A DNA stretch of 62,731 nt, counting the filler, from Sluysia triapertura (lineage: Eukaryota), in NCBI GenBank assembly GCA_046118255.1. It is 4 parts of 4 records of this genome, joined end to end, with 100 filler letters (N's around TTAATTAATTAA, not from the genome) between each part and the next. Parts side by side here need not be neighbours in the genome. Positions count along the whole stretch, not along the records: positions 51,287 to 62,731 come from JBJNIA010184657.1; 3 more parts are not named here. One strand, given 5' to 3'. The translations under genes were made by a program, and so were the position numbers. Below the pieces are notes generated by a model. It saw only the letters and a list, made by a program, of their open reading frames with translations, had not been told where the DNA came from and ran no database searches. This document shows, piece after piece, positions 51,287-62,731 of this stretch; position 1 is the stretch's first letter; each line of letters opens with the position of its first letter.

Positions 51287-53202
51287 CTAACTTAAAATAA
51301 TAAAATTAAATAATAAATCTATTTCAAAATAAAATTTTAAAATATTTTTCATTTCATTTGTTTAAATAAAGTAAAAGAATAAATAATATACATTGCAATA
51401 TGGCTAAAAAATATGGATATAAATAGTTTTGTTTTACAATGGAATTACACAGAGAAAATAAAAGAAAGTTTAATCTAAAAATTGGAACAATATTTTTGGC
51501 CATTTCTCAATTCCATGAAATCAAGTTTTTATATTCTTACCATATAAGGAAGGATAAAAATAAACTTAAAATCATCTAATTTTACAAGACCTTAATAAGA
51601 TTTGTTTAATTTAGTTTTTAAACTTCACACAGTTACTAAGAAAGTTCTTTTTCTTAAGTTACTCTATAAACTCAGTATTTTTACTATATTTTTGTGTATC
51701 GATCATTTACGTAAAATTATTTTGTACATTTTATCGACCATTTACATAATATACTTTTGTGGTAATTCTTTGTTATCCTATAAATTTACACTAAATTATT
51801 GATTGATTCACTAGACCTTAATAAGGCTCATTTAAAGTCTAATATTACTAACATATTTTAACGTGTACGCTAGACCATAACCGGCTAGCTTAATTGATTT
51901 AGAAACTATACCCATAATCTGGATGATTTAATTTGTTTAATTTATATAAGTTTTGGAATTAATCTTTGTTAAGCGTACCGAAAGGTTTCAGTAAATTCAT
52001 TTAGTATTATAACTATATTAAAATCCTAATAGACCGCTTTCGGGCAAATATAAGTGGCCTCTGTTAGGTGAACTCTTCAGATAAAAATATTTTTTCAAAA
52101 GTTTTTTTAGTATAAAAACCCAGCAATAACAATAAAACATGAATTTTTTACTTTAGAATAGAATATGTACAGAAAATAATGTGGTTAAATGATTAAATTT
52201 TGGGGTTTAGTTGTTTGATGACTTACATTACTTATATTTAAAATTTTATGTTTAAGTTTATTGCTAAAATCATTACGAAAAATTTACCAAGGTTTGTGTA
52301 TTAAAAAAGGCTAAAAGACGATAAAATTATTTATTAAATTTAATTTTTCAACTACTACTTCATTATTTATTTCAAAAATAACAAAAATAACACCAAAAGT
52401 ATTTATTAACTACACTATGATACTCTAAATTGTTCTTGCATCCTCATACTTTATATCTGATTGGTCAGCCTTTTCCAACCTCGCTTCATTTCCAGTGTAG
52501 CAAGAGAAGCTTCCATAATCAAATATATCCATTCGAGACCAACAAACGAATGGATTTAATTGATAAGGGATTATAGTAGCAAATCTCAATTTCAGATAAA
52601 GGCTTAGCCGCACTATAATTTTATAATAATAATTTTTTGCATGTATCAGTGATATGTAATTGAAAAGGATCTTTTAGCGAACTATTTAGATAATAGGTTT
52701 CTAACGCCTGTTCAGTAATAGATAAAGATTGTCCAATTCTAAAAGTGACAATTCCTTTTTTCATTATTTATATCAGTTATATTCAATTTACCTGATCCCT
52801 CTAATTTACAGTCATTTATTACATTATTACAGCTATAACATTGATATCCAAATCAGTATTACTTTGAATTTCATCTAACTTTTCTCGAAATCTTCGAACT
52901 AAATCAGGTATGATAGGATATTCTGACATTTTTAATATTCGTTTAGTGTTTTGGTCGGACTCGTCATATTCACTGATAGTAATAAGAGAAATCTTTAATG
53001 TTTATTCTAAATTTTTACAATGTTTTCTTATACGGTCATTACAATACTTTATGTATTTAGTTGAATTGATAAGTTTATTTAATTTTCTGTTTACACAACT
53101 TATATTTTATTGATTTAATTATGTATACCTTAAATAACATTGGTAGTCGAAATAATAGTTTTAGTCAAAAAATTCACTTAATGGACATTATAACTTTCAC
53201 AG

Positions 53203-53482
53203 ATCCTTGACAGCATTCAATCGTGTATTTGTCAGTCTTCGTCGGCAAGATCCAAATACAGTATGTTATCGAGACACAAAGTTGACACATTTATTGAAAC
53301 CTTTTCTAACTAACAGTGGAAAATGTGCTTTAATTATCACAGTTCGTACCGATAGACGTAGTCTAAGTTCAACTCAAAATACACTAAGATTCGGTCGAGA
53401 AACTCGTGGTGTTACCCTGGGTAAAGCACGCCGTCAACAAGTAAATCCCGTATCTCAATCAACACCATCTAATATTACTTAG
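53203..53482 (+). CDS. Terminal exon of a C-terminal-motor kinesin (kinesin-14-like)
   Basis: Acceptor TTTCACAG; SLTAFNRVFVSL..YRDTKLTHLLKPFL..GK..TQNTLRFG..GVTLGKARRQ, then stop. Confidence 0.85.
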
Positions 53483-54629
53483 TAATTAATTTAAAAAGCG
53501 TTCTTGCCAAGCATTATTCGTGTTAGTCAAAAAAGTGATTTATATAGAAATAGTTAGTTATATTTATCACAAAAAATTTCGGACGTAAATATATTAATGA
53601 GTTTAATTTAGTTTCATTTATTAACATTTTATTGTAAAACAATGATAAAAATTGAGTGATATTTTTTTAAATGAATAATTAAGCTAAGTATATTTTAACA
53701 CACATACTGTGTTATTCCATGAATTCATATACACAGTATTTGTATTGTTATAGATTTAAAGCATTCAAAATAGTGCAATAAGTAACACTAATAATAAATT
53801 AAATTTATTCAAATAAATGAAAGTTCAAGTTCGATTTTTACCCAATCTTAAATCGAAATTGGTTTTTACATCCAAAGGAATGATAGTAGCACTTTTTTCA
53901 TAGCTCCAAAGAAAGTATCATATAATATAGATGAAAAGAAGTAATATTATTTAGAGTTTTAATTAAGAATAATTCAGTTTTATGAAATATTTTAAATAAA
54001 AATAAATTTTAATCATGCAAATTATGGAAAAAAATTTATAGATTTATTTACAATTACCTATTCTATCTTCATTTTTGAAAAAATTTCGCACAAAAGTAAA
54101 TCTGTGTAATGATATTGAACAATGTCAAAAAATAAGCTTATAAAATAGGAATTGTATTTAACAAAATAAAAATAAATTTAAAAAAAAGATCAGAAGATAA
54201 ATATAGTACAAAAAATGCAATATTTAATTGTAAATAAGCATGAAAGTGAAGGTGCATTTTTTCGAAACCTATTTTATTCCGTATAATTATTCGGTGTACC
54301 ATGTGTAATGGCCGGGGTATTATCGCATTTAATTTGAAATTAAACGTTAAAATATTACTACAAATACAACCAGACTTAAGGTCTGTATAATCATTAACAT
54401 AGCTATTACTAGTTTCATTAATAACAAATTGAAAGCGCAAGTAACGCTTTATATTGAAAGATTTGAAAAAAGATTTTAAAATGTAAAGATTAACATAGTT
54501 ATTACTAATTTCATTAATAACAAATTGAAAACACATTGCGGTTTCGTATGGATAAACAAAATGTAAGTAACTAAAATATAGTAAAAAATATAAATCAAAA
54601 ACTAAAAATTTAACCAAATAACTATCGAC

Positions 54630-55554
54630 CTTTCTCGTAATTAATACTTCCAATTTACGTATATTGACCACAAAAAGTGATGGACTGCGAACCACGACAT
54701 CTAATTTAATTTCAGACCATATGTCACTGTTTCGAGAGAAACCTTCAATGAATCGTAGGTTGCGTTGCAAACCCTTTTCGAATTGTTTGATATGAGAGCA
54801 GAAAACCTGCTTATTCTGTACACCTCTAAAAGATGATATTGATACAAAAGTGCCATCAATTTGACCAAATCCTGCCTTTAACTGATATTTGTATTGTCGA
54901 ATCATTTCAATCCAGTCACGATCACGTTTTTTATTGTTGGAAATAGCAGAAACAATTTGCGACAACTTCAAATCTTCTAAAGGGCATAAAATGCGCGAAA
55001 ATTCATTTAGTTCTACATTTAAATAATTCTTATTATTGCTCCAAGGATAAATAGACGATGAAAGTGCCATAAGAGCAGGAATTTGGTTTGTTGGGTGCTC
55101 TAAAAATAGAGAACTATTGTTAGTCGAATGGAGTCCAATGAATGGCAGCTTGTGAGCAGAAGTTATTACTAGTCCTAACTTGCATAATGAAGACAATGGT
55201 AGTATCGAGTTATAATACCGTAAAGGCGAATCTCCGCTAGAATCTGAAGGCGTTGTTAAACAATTTACAATTTGTTGAAATTTACATTCGTCACGAATTT
55301 CTTCACTTAATTTACAACTTAGCCCAGAACCTGTTCCACCACCAATCTGTGAATAAAATTACATCCGACATAATAATCACGTCTTTCTATTATTTTACGA
55401 AAAGTTTCATTATAATCATAAAACCAATTAGAACCTCTTCCACAATTGGCATGTATTAAATTTTCACTGCGTAACATACGATTTATTTTTTGATCCCTTT
55501 TAATTTTAACTATAACTTTAGGTTTCTGCATAACACGATTATCTTTTACGCTTT
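54630..55554 (-). pseudogene. Zeta-tubulin-like (ZED group) locus with apparent frameshift
   Basis: PKVI..SENLIHANCGRGSNWFY..ERRDYYVGCNFIH[-1 nt]IGGGTGSGLSCKLSEEIRDE..GDSPLRYYNSILPLSSL..ILCPLEDLK; tubulin signature GGGTGSG at 55343-55323; 3' boundary approximate. Confidence 0.75.
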
Positions 55555-56038
55555 CTAAAGTATTGACTGTTTATAATTTTGTACAGTATATAATTTCAAT
55601 AACAAAAAACTATAATTAGTAACACAAGCATATAATATTAGTAACTTAACACAAATGATGAAAATTCAAACAAAACATTCTTTAAATAATTTTATCTCAA
55701 CATGTGTCATAAGAACTATTTTACAAGCACTGTCTCATCATCAAATCATAGATGAATTAGATTAAGCGAATAGTTTATTCTTTACAATAAATGTACTCAT
55801 TGTATTTGCACCTTTAATTTATCCAGAAAACTATCGTTTATATAAGACCAATTGAAGTAAAAATACAATAAATCGGACTTGCAAATTTATGTTTGACATT
55901 AATTTTTTTTTGTAACTATAGGTATTAAACATAAGACTAATTTATTTTAAAACAAAATTTATTGTTATTTTAATTATATGTTTAGTAAAAATATTTTCCA
56001 TAGGTTTGTTACATTGTTTTCTGATTTTGTACATACAC

Positions 56039-57610
56039 CTATCCCACGATTTATTTATAGCTACATTAGATATACTATCTCTATCTTTATGATCTGGTGT
56101 TTCTTTTACATTAAATTCTAAAACATAATCACTATTACTCGATGCACTTGATAATTGTTTGTTAATAGGCTCTTGTTGAGATCCTGAATCTGCTCGAACT
56201 TTGTGATGTTCTAAAAACCATTTTCGTAGCAAAGCAATTCCTTTTTCTAGTCGACTGGGACCATTAAGTTGTGGCATTTGGTATCGTATCATCATAGGAC
56301 TTCCATGTCCATCATCAAATTCTACATTACCTAAGGTGTCAGATTCTTCGCTTTGTAATTTTATCGTATGCGTTGAAGTCGTATCAGCATACTGTGAATT
56401 AGCAATTATGGGTGAAAGAATATTCTTATTTTCAGATTCCATAGAATTTTCAATCATTTCTATTGCTTGCCACTCTAGTAAACGACGTGTTAATTTACGA
56501 TAAAATATACGACGACAGTCTTTCCATTCTATTACTCCATGCAAAACACCTTTTGACATCATTCGACCGGGTGTGTCATGAAGAGCGACAAATGAAACTG
56601 CAATCTACAAAAAACTTTAGTTAAACATATGCTACTTATTACAGTAAATAAAATGTATTGGTGAAAAATTTAAACAGTACTTGATGATATATTGGCATAA
56701 CATGTGCAATGCGAGATTTTATTTTACGTTCTAAAGACGCACGACGATCTAAATCTTTCTTTTCTAAATTGGTGATTTCTTTTCGCAACGCTATACATTC
56801 TGAATCTAGTCGTAATATAGTCTAAACAAAAATGATGAATATAACATTTAATAAATTTGTACTTTTTCAATATCACGATTCTTGTATTTAATTTCAACAG
56901 TTCCTTCTGGTTCTAAAACTCCACCATGTGATGTGTAATTATCTGCATACATTTCAATAAAATCTGGATTTATATTGTAATCAAGTACTACCCAGGCACC
57001 ACCTCTTAATTCACAATAAGGCGGAATATAGACGAATACTGGCCTTGTATAACGCTTTAATTCATCAACGATATAAGAACCGAATTTTAATACCTTGATA
57101 TATAAAATTCAGTTAATACATAAATTAAAACATCATATAAAATAAATAAGTTTCGAAAAATATAATACAATATAATATAATATATAATAATAAAAGCAAA
57201 CCTCATCATACATATCCATCATTCCACCAGAAAATCCCCTCCAGTTAGCAAGAATAAAAAGTGGTAACTCTTCACGTGCAAAGTCTCGAATAGCTTGAGC
57301 AGTTTTATAAGATGACGATGGAAACCATACTTGACCTGCATGCTGAACTTGTTGAAACTCTGAGGACGGATTTGCAGGATCAGCTGGTCTCTCCGTAGTT
57401 ACTGTTCTGGTTTCTGGAGTTATAACCCCTACTGGTATTCCACCAAGTCTTGCTCGACCAACTATTACGTTACTCGCCCAGTCATGAAGAATTTCACACC
57501 AAGAATTTCGATCAAAAATACCTCCATACCAAACCACTTTATTTTCTGTTAATCCTGTTATCATCAGACGAGGATCAACAGCAGTGTTTGCGTTCTGACA
57601 CACCAATTGA
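56039..57610 (-). CDS. ACC: Acetyl-CoA carboxylase, carboxyltransferase 3' exons 57610-57202, 57093-56863, 56821-56681, 56604-56039
   Basis: [77 protein letters not shown]; GT-AG junctions in frame. Confidence 0.95.
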
Positions 57611-60600
57611 CTAAATTATCAATATATATATCAAGTTCATTTCATTTTACTTAAAACGATAGAAAACTTTTAATCTTTTAAGATTTACTTATTTATGTTC
57701 AATATTTTACTAAAAATTTCACTAACAATTATAACATTAAAATTTCATACTTTTCATAGCACAATTCAAACTAAACGTATAACACTTAAAAAGTTTAAGA
57801 TTTAAAATCTTAATTTTTAAAGACTACAATACCTTTTGTAATGAAACTTTTGTATAAACAATTCTTTTCTCCTATGTTACGTATTTATGCCTTATTAAAG
57901 TTTAGTAAAATTAAAAACGAGTCGTTAAAAATTCCGAACAATTTTGATTCACAATTTAGTAGAATAGTGAGGATTAATTTTATATGGCAACTGCTAGTCA
58001 ATCAGCACATCTTCATTATCAAGTTTAAGAAAATGAAATGAAAAAAAAAGAAAAGGTTGGAAAATTTTTAACGTTGAAGCAGATGGTACTTGCTTGTTTC
58101 GTGCAGTGGAAATATTTGGAAATGAAGACAAACATAAACTCATTCGAGATCAATTTATAAATAACATGAAACAAAGTTGAGAACACTTTTCACAATTTAT
58201 ATCAGAATATTTTGATCTATACTTAAAAACTTTAATGAGTAGTGCAGTTTGTATCATCAATTCACACAATCAGGTGTGTTACAGGAAAGAGTTCATGCTT
58301 GTTGTCGGTTTCATGAGTGTCGAACCCTTTATAAATGGTACTATTATAGTAATAAGAGTTATTTTTTATTCCAATAAGAGTGCAGGCCGGCACTAAATAA
58401 TGTTTTTAAAAATAATTTACATGTTCAAATTTTGTTGCTTGGAATTTTATGCACTTGTAATTTAGAAATATTTTACAAATTTGGAAATTAAAAATTAATA
58501 TTTTAAAAAGAATAATTAAAATGGTACAAGACTTTGTTTAAATATTTTAAAAAAAATATTCGCCTTTTTCATACATTTATAAATTTCTATTTATAATATA
58601 TAGTATAATTAAAATTTAATTCAAAACAAAAACATTATAGTTATATCATTACATGAACACAATTGCTGAATGACAAATATTATAGTCAATGCAAATTTGT
58701 AGTACTCGTAATTGTAGTAGTAATGAAAGTAGAACTCAATATTCAGATTAAGGTTGTTTGTAAACTCATAATAATAACTATTTGATGTGTGTTGTGATAA
58801 CAACTATATCTATTATTAATTGATGTGTGACTGTGTATTTATTGATTTTAACCATAATATTTTTTGATTATTTAATAGTAAATTAATAACTGTTATTTAT
58901 TAATATTTATTTTTCACAATATTTATTGATTTTCATCATAATTTTGTAATTTACATAAATATAATTATAATGTAAGTAACTATCTTTAATTTTATTACTT
59001 AATCCATGTATTAAAATTATTAAGTGATTGTTTAAATCCATTCTAAATAGTGCAAGGTCAGTTTTAAAACTAATATAAATACGCTACATTTTATAATTAA
59101 ACACACTTTTTTAAATATCATTTTGATAGTTTGCTTTAAAATTTGGAAAAGCGGAATTTTTTGCCAAATAAAATTCGTTAATTTGTTTTTATTAAGTTAT
59201 AGTACTTTTAGTACACTCGTAACATACTTAAATTACCATTGTATATTTTAGAACCATTTAAAGGTTTTTTTTGTAAAATACTAAGCAAAATCATTTTTGT
59301 TAAAATTAACTTCACTAAGTTAATTTCGTATTCTCACTATCAATAATTATTAATTTTTTGTAAGAATTTTTACTTGTATGTTTGTCTTTAATAATATATA
59401 TTTTTATTTGTTCCTAGCACTTATCACTATTATTATTGTTATTATTTCTGCTACTTCCACTTTTATATGTTTCATTATATTGCTCAAAATCGTTTATCAT
59501 TCATTACAACACATCTAAAACATAAAGAACCTTAGTAAAAATTATGATTTTATTAAAAGAACACTTGCATAGCAAATTCATTCAAATACATTGTTTTAAT
59601 TTATAGTCTTATGTATACTTTCACTTATTGTTTCTTTTATGTATGTATATATCTATTTATTTCTCTATATTTATGTACATACCTTTCTCATTATCGTTTT
59701 TAGTATTTTATCATTAATGACAAGTTTAAAATTTTCGCTAGGCATGTTTTTTCGTTCAAAACATCAGTATACACTTTTACCATGTTTTTCTTAAAATTGA
59801 AAACAATAATTAAAATTTAACGTTTATGAAGTGGAAATGATTTTTAAATTGTACGGGATATTTATAAAATTACAATAAAAACGTTTAAAATTTATATATT
59901 TAAAAATTAATACTTAATTAGCTAAAAAAGTAATAATAATTTAAATGATCGATAATTACCTAGTCACTGCTAGGCTTAATTAACTTTTAAAATTTTTATA
60001 TTGAAATTACTTGTTATATAAATTACTCTGTTAGATTAATAAAATTATGCATATTTATAATTTGGAATAGTCATTTCTTAGTTGTAGGTAAAAACCTAAA
60101 TTTCGGACATGGTTTAACAACAAACCAGAGTCATCATGGTTATTCATTTTAATGTAGATTTTCAAAATATTTATATTATTTTATGTTGTGATCAAGAAAC
60201 TAATCATAGAAACCCTAATTCTCAATTACTATTATTCAGTCAATATATCATTTGAAATGACATTTATTATCAAACTAATTTAACGGTGAAAGAACCAATA
60301 ATCAAATTGAAGTCTTTGGCATTCTTTACTGGTTCGAATTATCCAAGTATGGTAGTATGTATAATTTCATTGGATTTCGAGTATGATTTATTCACTTTAT
60401 CTCTACATTTTATGCTACTTAAAGTTCTAGTTCTCGTTGTTTTATTATTTAATACAGGGTTTGTTTATTTTGTTTTTTTCTTTGTTCATATTACAATTTG
60501 TTAGTTATTTTAACGACGTTTAACCTTACAAGCAAAATGTTAGAATTTTGTCTAAGGTTAAACAATTTTAATGTAAAAAAAATTAATGAAAAATTTCGTT

Positions 60601-62659
60601 ATAATTACGAACTAATCGAAGATTTAACCATTTATATTTGAGGCCAAATCCTAAAACTAAAATGAGTTTTATCTGAAATAAAAATAATTTTTTTGAATTA
60701 CATACGGTCATTGTTATTAATATACTTTACTTTGTTTACAATCGATTTATTATAAGCATTATAAATATAATTAAAATAAATTCACGCAAGTTTCGATGCC
60801 TGTAAAGCAATATAAAATATTTCAAATTTTTGAATATTGGTAATTTAATTTAAAATCAGCAAGAAAATCAATAGATAATTTTATTACATATATTTTTTCT
60901 GATGTAATGTTTTAGAGTAATAATTTAGCCCATATTGAAATTAGACTTAATGTAGCAGGACAGTACAGATTGATGTAGATGTTGGGAATGAAATGTTGTT
61001 GAGCCGAGTAGATTTCACAAAATTTGAAAGAAGCGTTATTTAGAATTTTTGAAATGAGTCTATCTTTGTTACTTATAAAGTAATTGGTATTGCAAACGTT
61101 CTTTGTATAAATTAAAATCAATTTTCATAGTTTCATAACATAGAATTTCGTTAATATCTAAATGTACAGAGTAATTGAATCTTTTTCCATCATTTTATAT
61201 TAACTCTATTTAATATACTTTTTATAACTTTCACAATATTTGATCTTAAACTTAAGAAAAGCTCTTCAATACCTTTTAGATCGTTATATAAGTTACACTT
61301 AGCGATTTAATTAAAATATAAATCAGTTTCGAATTTTGGTTAAGATTTATTTCAATTTCAAAGTCGAATAATGAAAATCGGGAGAGTTTGTCTCAACTTA
61401 GATTTCGTGGAGGTTCGTATTATTTTTTGTTTACAATTTATAGTGAATTGCCTTTTATTTAGTATTTGGCGAAAATTCAGAATTGTAACATTAATGAGAA
61501 TGCAATCTACTCTATATATGTCAAAAAGACAATAAACAACTTGAATTCTAATATACATTTATTTTATACTAAAATGATACAATACATAATAAAAATAAAA
61601 CTTAAAAGACTTATTAAATGGTTTATTCAAAATGTAAATTGAGAGATATGAACTGTTATAGATTCTTCGTAACACTATGAATTATTTCCGCAGGATAATA
61701 ATGAATTGTTAATTTATCTCGATAAAGAGTAAATTTTAACAAGCTATTAGAATCACTATTTTACTGAGCCTACCCATCATTTTACTTTCATACTGACTTT
61801 TCATTACTTTAAAATAAACATTGATATAAAACATCATTTTCATGATATTTGTACGTATAGTCATAGCTTTCGCTTAAATTTTTATACACAACGTTATCAT
61901 TTATTTGACTTAACTGAATTTTTTAACATGAACATTAAATTAGTATTCTCATAATCGTTCATCAATTGATATTGTGAAGAATCTGAAAATACATTCAAAT
62001 TCGATAAGAGTAGTGATCCAGAATTGTGTTTTATCAAACCTAATGCTGAATATTTTTTTCCACCAATAAGTTAACTTGAGGTTGTGCAACTAGACATGCA
62101 GAATCCGTAAATGCATAATTAACCACAGCAGATTTTAAGTTACTAAAGAGATCTGAAACGCATGTTAATGCTGGTTCGCAATGATTTTAAAATCATCAGC
62201 AAAAAATTTTATTTTAAAAGGTCGTACTGATATACTCATAGCACATAAATATTAACTTGATAACCATTAGAAAGTGGATGTTTTTCTTTGTTAGTAAGTA
62301 CATCAATACAAATATCAAATCTCAACAACTTTTCTCAAACTTTTAACAATAAAGCACGAAACATAATCAGACAATTACCAAACGATTACCAAGGTTTGCT
62401 TAAAATTTAATTTCTAACTTATTTTAATACCTTTTTCCATGTAATAAAATTATTTTTCTTCAGCTAACTAAAGATGACATACAAACAATATTTGCCTGCA
62501 TTACACCTTCACTGAAACAAAATATGAATTGGAAGCTATTACAGGAATTCACATTTCATTTGTTTGGTGGCGAAATCAGTAAATGAATTCGCTATTGACA
62601 AAATAATTACCTAAAGTTAATACCTGTGAGAGCTAAATTAAATTTACGATATTAATTGA

Positions 62660-62731
<72 letters not shown>

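Follow-up and report, generated by a model that had tools for sequence, protein, structure and literature searches.

A tubulin-like locus in the genome of Sluysia triapertura, divided in the assembly into two reading frames, is best explained as a zeta-tubulin gene that is under very weak constraint and at an early stage of loss; we give this reading a probability of about one-half. Zeta-tubulin is a basal-body protein and belongs to the least understood class of tubulins. The window (i.e., the whole stretch of DNA analyzed) is 62,731 nucleotides long, and the locus lies in the piece at positions 51287-62731 (JBJNIA010184657.1; ~11.4 kb), to which all genome-side searches were confined. The G+C content is ~25% across this piece. 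On its minus strand, exons of acetyl-CoA carboxylase (ACC) are followed by a 410-nt spacer and then by the tubulin-like sequence (see the table below). An Atlas feature search returned weak tubulin leads (0.86), and an Rfam search of positions 51287-62731 returned no match.

A single public run containing the locus (here referred to as X1) was compared with the window over positions 53000-58000. The run is represented by assembled contigs whose library type is not on record and that carry neither strand, transcript ends, nor expression level. These contigs are 2 to 4% divergent from the window and may thus be derived from other haplotypes or from a paralogue. The two pieces of the tubulin-like open reading frame (ORF) were searched and folded separately and were joined by an X at the break only for the alignment, the conserved-column counts, and the tree.

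Features of the locus (positions along the window)
Feature	Position	Strand	Details
Kinesin last exon, C-terminal motor	53165-53482	+	Pfam Kinesin positions 261-325 of 327, E 7.5e-12
Hydrophobic C-terminal extension	54138-54386	-	~80 residues past the zeta-tubulin end; stop at 54138-54140
Second part of tubulin-like ORF	54141-55346	-	402 codons, IGGGTGSG... to stop at 54138-54140
In-frame duplication of last helix	54388-54535	-	Copies of 52 nt (54484-54535 and 54388-54439), 88% alike, 96 nt apart
SYLHFVYPYE	54543-54572	-	Degenerate counterpart of AYLHWYxKYG; Y, L, H kept; W, Y, G lost
LNVELNEFSRILCPLEDLKL	54963-55022	-	Counterpart of G-EPWE-xRSxCPxPxxKF, H8/T7 region; profile, PDB, and MAFFT alignment
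LVITSAHKL at T5	55146-55172	-	Family DG-xxLFxNDD; Asp and Asn-Asp pair lost
GDSPLRYYNS	55206-55235	-	Counterpart of G[ED][ST]PLQxYN; Q>R
GGGTGSG, tubulin signature, T4 loop	55323-55343	-	Present
Frame break	55346-55348	-	Window CAC AG- ATT; X1 CAC AGC ATT (H S I)
First part of tubulin-like ORF	55349-55531	-	61 codons, MQKPKVIVK...NFIH
GRGSNW, T3 loop (tubulin GxGNNW)	55424-55441	-	Intact in window
Spacer, ACC stop codon to first ATG	55532-55941	-	410 nt; stops in all three frames
ACC last exon	55942-56604	-	Stop codon included; upstream neighbor, same strand
ACC intron	56605-56680	-	76 nt, GT..AG; spliced out in X1 contig (joint 56604>56681, depth 149.7)
ACC 3' exon	57133-57606	-	Pfam Carboxyl_trans 57136-57606, E 3e-35

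Reading frame and the one-base break

In the window, two minus-strand frames (55531-55349 and 55346-54141), both carrying tubulin motifs, are joined at a one-base gap. As the initial annotation had proposed, the GGGTGSG signature lies in a stop-free stretch (54141-55358) upstream of, and in frame with, the ORF called at 54138-55196, and the ORF at 55319-55531 encodes both GRGSNW and ERRDYYVG (55387-55364). The junction was also placed correctly: the frames meet at CAC AG- ATT GGT GGT GGA (55351-55338), where a profile of zeta-like tubulins positions the two fragments as abutting.

The one-base break itself is absent from X1. The only X1 contig at this point carries an extra G behind position 55346 (plus strand; a C in the minus-strand reading; depth, 82.8/82.8), and the loose end (8 letters, at 55347) of a second contig agrees with the window sequence plus this G. 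Reads with the missing base had been named in advance as a refuting result (assembly error), and such a result was obtained with this run. The extra base restores HSIGGGTGSG, in which H and S occupy family columns that are at least 90% conserved, and yields a stop-free ORF of 464 codons that starts with the ATG at 55531 and runs up to the stop codon at 54138. With the base composition of the ORF itself, the chance of 464 stop-free codons is ~5e-17, which rules out a chance ORF; the corresponding values for the last 70 and the last 163 codons are 0.005 and 2.9e-6, respectively. The other two frames across the ORF are full of stops. A ciliate-type genetic code was also ruled out, as the 464-codon frame lacks TAA and TAG and encodes Gln by CAA and CAG.

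The 23-nt GT..AG segment at 55369-55347, offered earlier as an intron that could restore the frame, has the letters described and does overlap a conserved strand. As an intron it was rejected, because a contig crossing it shows no skip and the stretch aligns to the strand before HS-GGTGSG.

Either the window haplotype carries a deletion here or the assembly slipped by one base. The X1 contigs diverge from the window at many further sites, so a true difference between haplotypes, and not an assembly error, may account for the missing base. Only two indels distinguish X1 from the window across 53000-58000, and so few indel differences over 5 kb suggest that indel errors are not a general feature of the assembly. 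The reading frame is whole in the population that X1 samples, and the window copy lacks one base of a conserved Ser codon. For annotation, the locus is a case of a real gene hidden by a one-base difference between assembly and reads.

Motif content and predicted structure

The tubulin homology of the locus is clear from sequence matches of three kinds (i.e., Pfam, a zeta-like profile, and PDB). The Pfam Tubulin profile (PF00091) matched the GGGTGSG piece with 32.7 bits (E value of 1.2e-7), well outside what chance would give; the score is 0.3 bit short of the gathering score of 33 because only profile positions 115-172 were recognized. PDB tubulins aligned to residues 2-130 of the same piece, through the T7 region, with a best E value of 7e-5. 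With a local profile built from 93 full-length members of the zeta-like family, the fragment at 55322-55570 matched positions 48-124 (26 bits), and 54141-55358 matched positions 124-343 (66 bits); nothing else in the six frames of 51287-62731 rose above noise.

Once the break is mended, colinearity between the ORF and zeta-tubulin extends from family position 48 to the C terminus (MAFFT being used for the C-terminal remainder). The first part of the ORF corresponds to zeta-tubulin positions 48-123; it begins with the strand EPKV, includes the T3 loop, and ends with the strand that precedes T4. Toward the C terminus of the predicted product (here called the window protein), SLFVVN aligns to the family motif SLTVxxN, and CFQFVINEISNNY aligns to DFxxAFxxLxxVIxxY (MAFFT). 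The latter segment is the helix that has been duplicated in frame, the two copies encoding CFQFVINEISNNY and RFQFVINETSNSYVNDY. A "broken LHWY" had been suspected at 54295-54310. This candidate was ruled out as a chance match, lying in the wrong frame with flanking stops and scoring -3.7 bits; the true counterpart of AYLHWY is SYLHFVYPYE.

Many conserved features are altered. Residues lost at columns that are at least 90% conserved include the T5 Asn-Asp pair (N>A126 and D>H127) and the Asn of the T6/H6-H7 region (N>T148). The WNPFP block is changed, and the segment past NW is shortened, as had been suspected: helix 3 is ~15 residues short there. The GRGSNW motif is altered in the X1 alleles, in which its second glycine, a near-invariant column, is replaced by V (55434) or S (55435). 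In total, the window protein keeps 39 of the 74 near-invariant columns (i.e., those at least 90% conserved in 93 members), the family minimum and median being 63 and 73, respectively; fungal and protist relatives keep 49 to 62 of the 74.

No match to zeta-tubulin positions 1-47 (i.e., the first strand, the GQCGNQ T1 loop, and helix 1) was found in the six frames of 51287-62731, with filters off. In tubulins, the N-terminal strand and the T1 loop hold the nucleotide phosphates. We infer from the sequence that the window protein would be unable to bind GTP as tubulins do, since it has lost the first strand and the T1 loop, a portion of helix 3, the T5 Asn-Asp pair, and roughly half of the near-invariant residues. 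A short minus-strand ORF at 55762-55800, MSTFIVKNKLFA*, resembles the start of zeta-tubulin (MSSVVLQVG...) over seven residues and may be either a relic of a lost first exon or a chance similarity.

An AlphaFold model of positions 54387-55346 (minus strand), run with the family alignment supplied, had a mean pLDDT of 66.6 and a pTM of 0.63. The pLDDT was mostly 70 to 90 in the remainder of the GTPase domain and in the intermediate domain, and it was <50 over the last 80 residues, in the C-terminal third. Foldseek matches for the predicted fold were tubulins only (E value of ~2e-9), a result that leans on the supplied alignment.

Transcription, constraint, and competing explanations

Contigs of run X1 bear on the transcription of the locus. 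Removal of the 76-nt ACC intron joins ...MPIYHQ to a conserved ACC stretch, and the presence of this spliced form in X1 indicates that the run holds RNA-derived sequence. Over the tubulin-like ORF and the upstream spacer, X1 contigs have depths of 80 to 100 per version, and the depth over the ACC last exon is 150. No splice joint is listed for X1 contigs within 54336-55838, including at the 23-nt GT..AG. As judged from the contigs of this run, the tubulin-like gene is apparently transcribed. X1 contigs cover the spacer (55532-55941) unbroken at depths of 70 to 370, a pattern that read-through or a shared transcript could explain. A possible splice acceptor, TGTTATGCAG, is present at 55535-55526 and overlaps the ATG of the tubulin-like ORF.

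Variation within the ORF gives a measure of present constraint. Of the 24 differences listed between X1 and the window inside the ORF (25 more being unlisted), 19 are nonsynonymous and 5 are synonymous; with a ratio of nonsynonymous to synonymous sites of 3.88, the 24 listed differences give a dN/dS of ~1. For the same 24 differences, a dN/dS of 0.3 is rejected (p 0.009) and 0.5 is compatible (p 0.12). Two X1 versions are present at 55393-55444 (depths of ~86 and ~99), and each of the three versions has its own lesion at a conserved site (i.e., G>V, G>S, or the frameshift). Variation among the haplotypes appears neutral.

The history of the frame appears different from its present state. In a tree of the zeta-like sequences, the terminal branch of the window protein is 2.72, compared with a median of 0.84. 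A branch of such length without stops is impossible under neutral drift, so the frame was protected by selection through most of its history. Similarly, a stop-free ORF on a long branch in DNA of 25% G+C indicates that most of the divergence arose under selection for an open frame, an observation that also fits a still-useful protein. On the most likely reading, the protein-coding frame was maintained through most of the history of the gene, and constraint is now very weak or none. The gene is better described as weakly constrained than as plainly dead. The description of the locus as apparently decaying therefore needs to be divided: the frame break on which it drew falls away in X1, where the base is present and 464 codons are open, and the erosion, the missing N terminus, and the neutral-like variation remain in its favor.

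A tentative alternative, which we consider possible and on balance unlikely, is that the locus encodes a functional, fast-evolving protein of tubulin fold that no longer needs GTP (i.e., a pseudo-GTPase or scaffold), the gap in the window being an assembly error or a rare null allele. The 464 stop-free codons (p 5e-17), with the other two frames full of stops, argue for this, as do the colinearity with zeta-tubulin to the very C terminus and the presence of the missing base in both X1 versions. In a run that contains RNA, moreover, the depth over the ORF is near that of the ACC 3' exon, and the intermediate domain is predicted at a pLDDT of 70 to 90. However, part of the core sheet is gone with the central first strand and the T1 loop, the C-terminal third has a pLDDT of <50, and the duplicated helix and the ~80-residue hydrophobic read-through tail look as though the original stop had been lost. 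The dN/dS of ~1 at the listed sites and the change of a conserved glycine in both X1 alleles also stand against a working protein. A more specific proposal, and an unlikely one, is that an N-terminally truncated zeta-tubulin derivative without a working nucleotide pocket is kept as an open, transcribed gene, its remaining tubulin body having a GTP-independent structural role at the basal body; it would be a tubulin pseudo-GTPase, with a frameshift null allele segregating in the species.

It is improbable that the window copy is a dead duplicate and that the X1 contigs sample a live paralogue at another site in the genome. Window-identical X1 contigs are found only in the flanks, at depths of 13 to 18, whereas the contigs over the ORF (depths of 80 to 100) are every one unlike the window and include the two versions at 55393-55444, as such a paralogue would explain. 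However, over the ACC last exon just upstream, the X1 contig (56152-56604; 453 nt; depth, 150) shows no difference from the window, and coverage continues from it into the spacer. This identity and the unbroken coverage fit the same locus sampled through other haplotypes. Furthermore, G>V or G>S in GRGSNW is found in the very copies that are supposed to be live, and their differences from the window are of a neutral-like kind. The preferred reading remains a zeta-tubulin gene under very weak constraint.

Relationship to zeta-tubulin and flanking sequence

Word-index protein searches with both window pieces found no relatives, which were reached by an exhaustive profile search alone. Among 1.84 billion representative proteins, this search gave 38 matches at an E value of <=0.001, all belonging to the tubulin superfamily; 36 are zeta-like, the exceptions being an epsilon-like fragment (P0021) and a beta-like fragment (P0027). 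Every zeta-like match that was fetched contains G[ED][ST]PLQxYN or a close variant, and the full-length ones also contain AYLHWY. The best match, P0001, is followed by tubulins of 400 to 414 residues with 30 to 33% identity.

A search seeded with one of the matches (P0004) recovered a family of 405 to 425 residues from Xenopus, marsupials, reptiles, fish, amphioxus, echinoderms, molluscs, annelids, brachiopods, cnidarians, and Trichoplax. Neither a placental mammal nor an ecdysozoan was present among the best 120 matches. According to published surveys, zeta-tubulin is present in Metatheria, absent in Eutheria and Ecdysozoa, and sister to delta-tubulin (PMC4202323, PMC10063605, PMC4741028). 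Since the range of the P0004 family equals the published range of zeta-tubulin, we identified the family as zeta-tubulin. In our preferred reading, the locus is a genuine descendant of zeta-tubulin within the delta/zeta branch, the choice of zeta over delta being made by species range and motifs and not by the tree. The zeta-like assignment in the initial annotation is borne out by the same matches, all but two of the 38 falling in the family with G[ED][ST]PLQxYN and AYLHWY. The PDB contains no delta, epsilon, or zeta chain.

That the locus is instead a delta-tubulin is very improbable: the NCBI pipeline names members of the matching family "tubulin delta chain-like", and the grouping of delta with zeta has strong support (PMC4202323), but a family of 405 to 425 residues whose members come from marsupials, Xenopus, reptiles, and fish, the best 120 matches including no placental sequence, has the published range of zeta and not of delta (PMC4202323, PMC4741028).

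In the tree, which was built without a verified delta-tubulin, the window protein pairs with P0001 (SH-aLRT of 80); the branching order of this pair and the other zeta-like sequences is not resolved at their base, and the branch is very long. P0001 (UniParc UPI000600DEE6; 212 aa) is the closest of 1.8 billion representatives (E value of 3e-23). It is 54% identical to the window protein over the T4 region and 36% identical over 157 residues, and the two share SD-xGDSPLxYYN and SS-YPW-xxK-YLN-E-NE. Unlike the window protein, P0001 keeps GQCGNQ and LFHND and has a terminal branch of 0.99 (compared with 2.72); it is a partial gene model. Neither P0001 nor the two window ORFs have an exact entry in the gene-position index.

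With zeta-tubulin itself (TUBZ1; the basal-foot tubulin of Xenopus; here P0096 and the P0004 family), the window protein has in common GRGSNW, ERxDxYxG, HS-GGTGSG, G[ED]SPLxxYNS, CPxxxxK, FRG, SLxVxxN, and xYLH near the C terminus. Their identity is ~25%, whereas zeta-tubulins of different animal phyla are 37 to 46% identical among themselves. In contrast to zeta-tubulin, the window protein is without residues 1-47, has a short helix 3 and a duplicated last helix, and carries an extension of ~80 residues.

Delta-tubulin (TUBD1) is the sister class of zeta-tubulin, and the two proteins function at centrioles and basal bodies (PMC4202323, PMC11156431). Of the tubulin classes, zeta shows the lowest conservation and the most frequent loss (PMC4202323, PMC10063605). 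Known losses are those in placental mammals and Ecdysozoa and, for all three ZED tubulins, in Diptera. The eroded copy described here fits this pattern of loss; the published cases are absences, whereas here the gene is present, open in the X1 contigs, and apparently transcribed. Published surveys of zeta-tubulin have recorded presence or absence only. An open and apparently transcribed copy that lacks the nucleotide-binding parts and varies neutrally would show a route by which zeta-tubulin is lost, and it would bear on whether the body of a tubulin can be useful without GTP.

Several observations concern the sequence around the gene. Downstream, the last exon of a C-terminal-motor kinesin (53165-53482) is convergent with the tubulin-like gene. 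In an X1 contig, CAA is changed to TAA at 53438, so that the kinesin would end 14 codons earlier, and X1 has one base fewer at 53498, beside an A5 run. In the intergenic region, 175 nt (53819-53993) are replaced by 40 other letters in one X1 contig, probably a structural variant between haplotypes. In the ACC region, X1 has a second skip at low depth (CT..AC; 57809-57939; 131 nt). The depth of X1 contigs also varies along 53000-58000. Those that cover the kinesin exon, the tubulin-like ORF, and the spacer reach 60 to 150 and are 2 to 4% different from the window, mostly by transitions; the window-identical contigs of the flanks and introns have depths of 13 to 18, yet the ACC last-exon contig, likewise identical, has a depth of 150.
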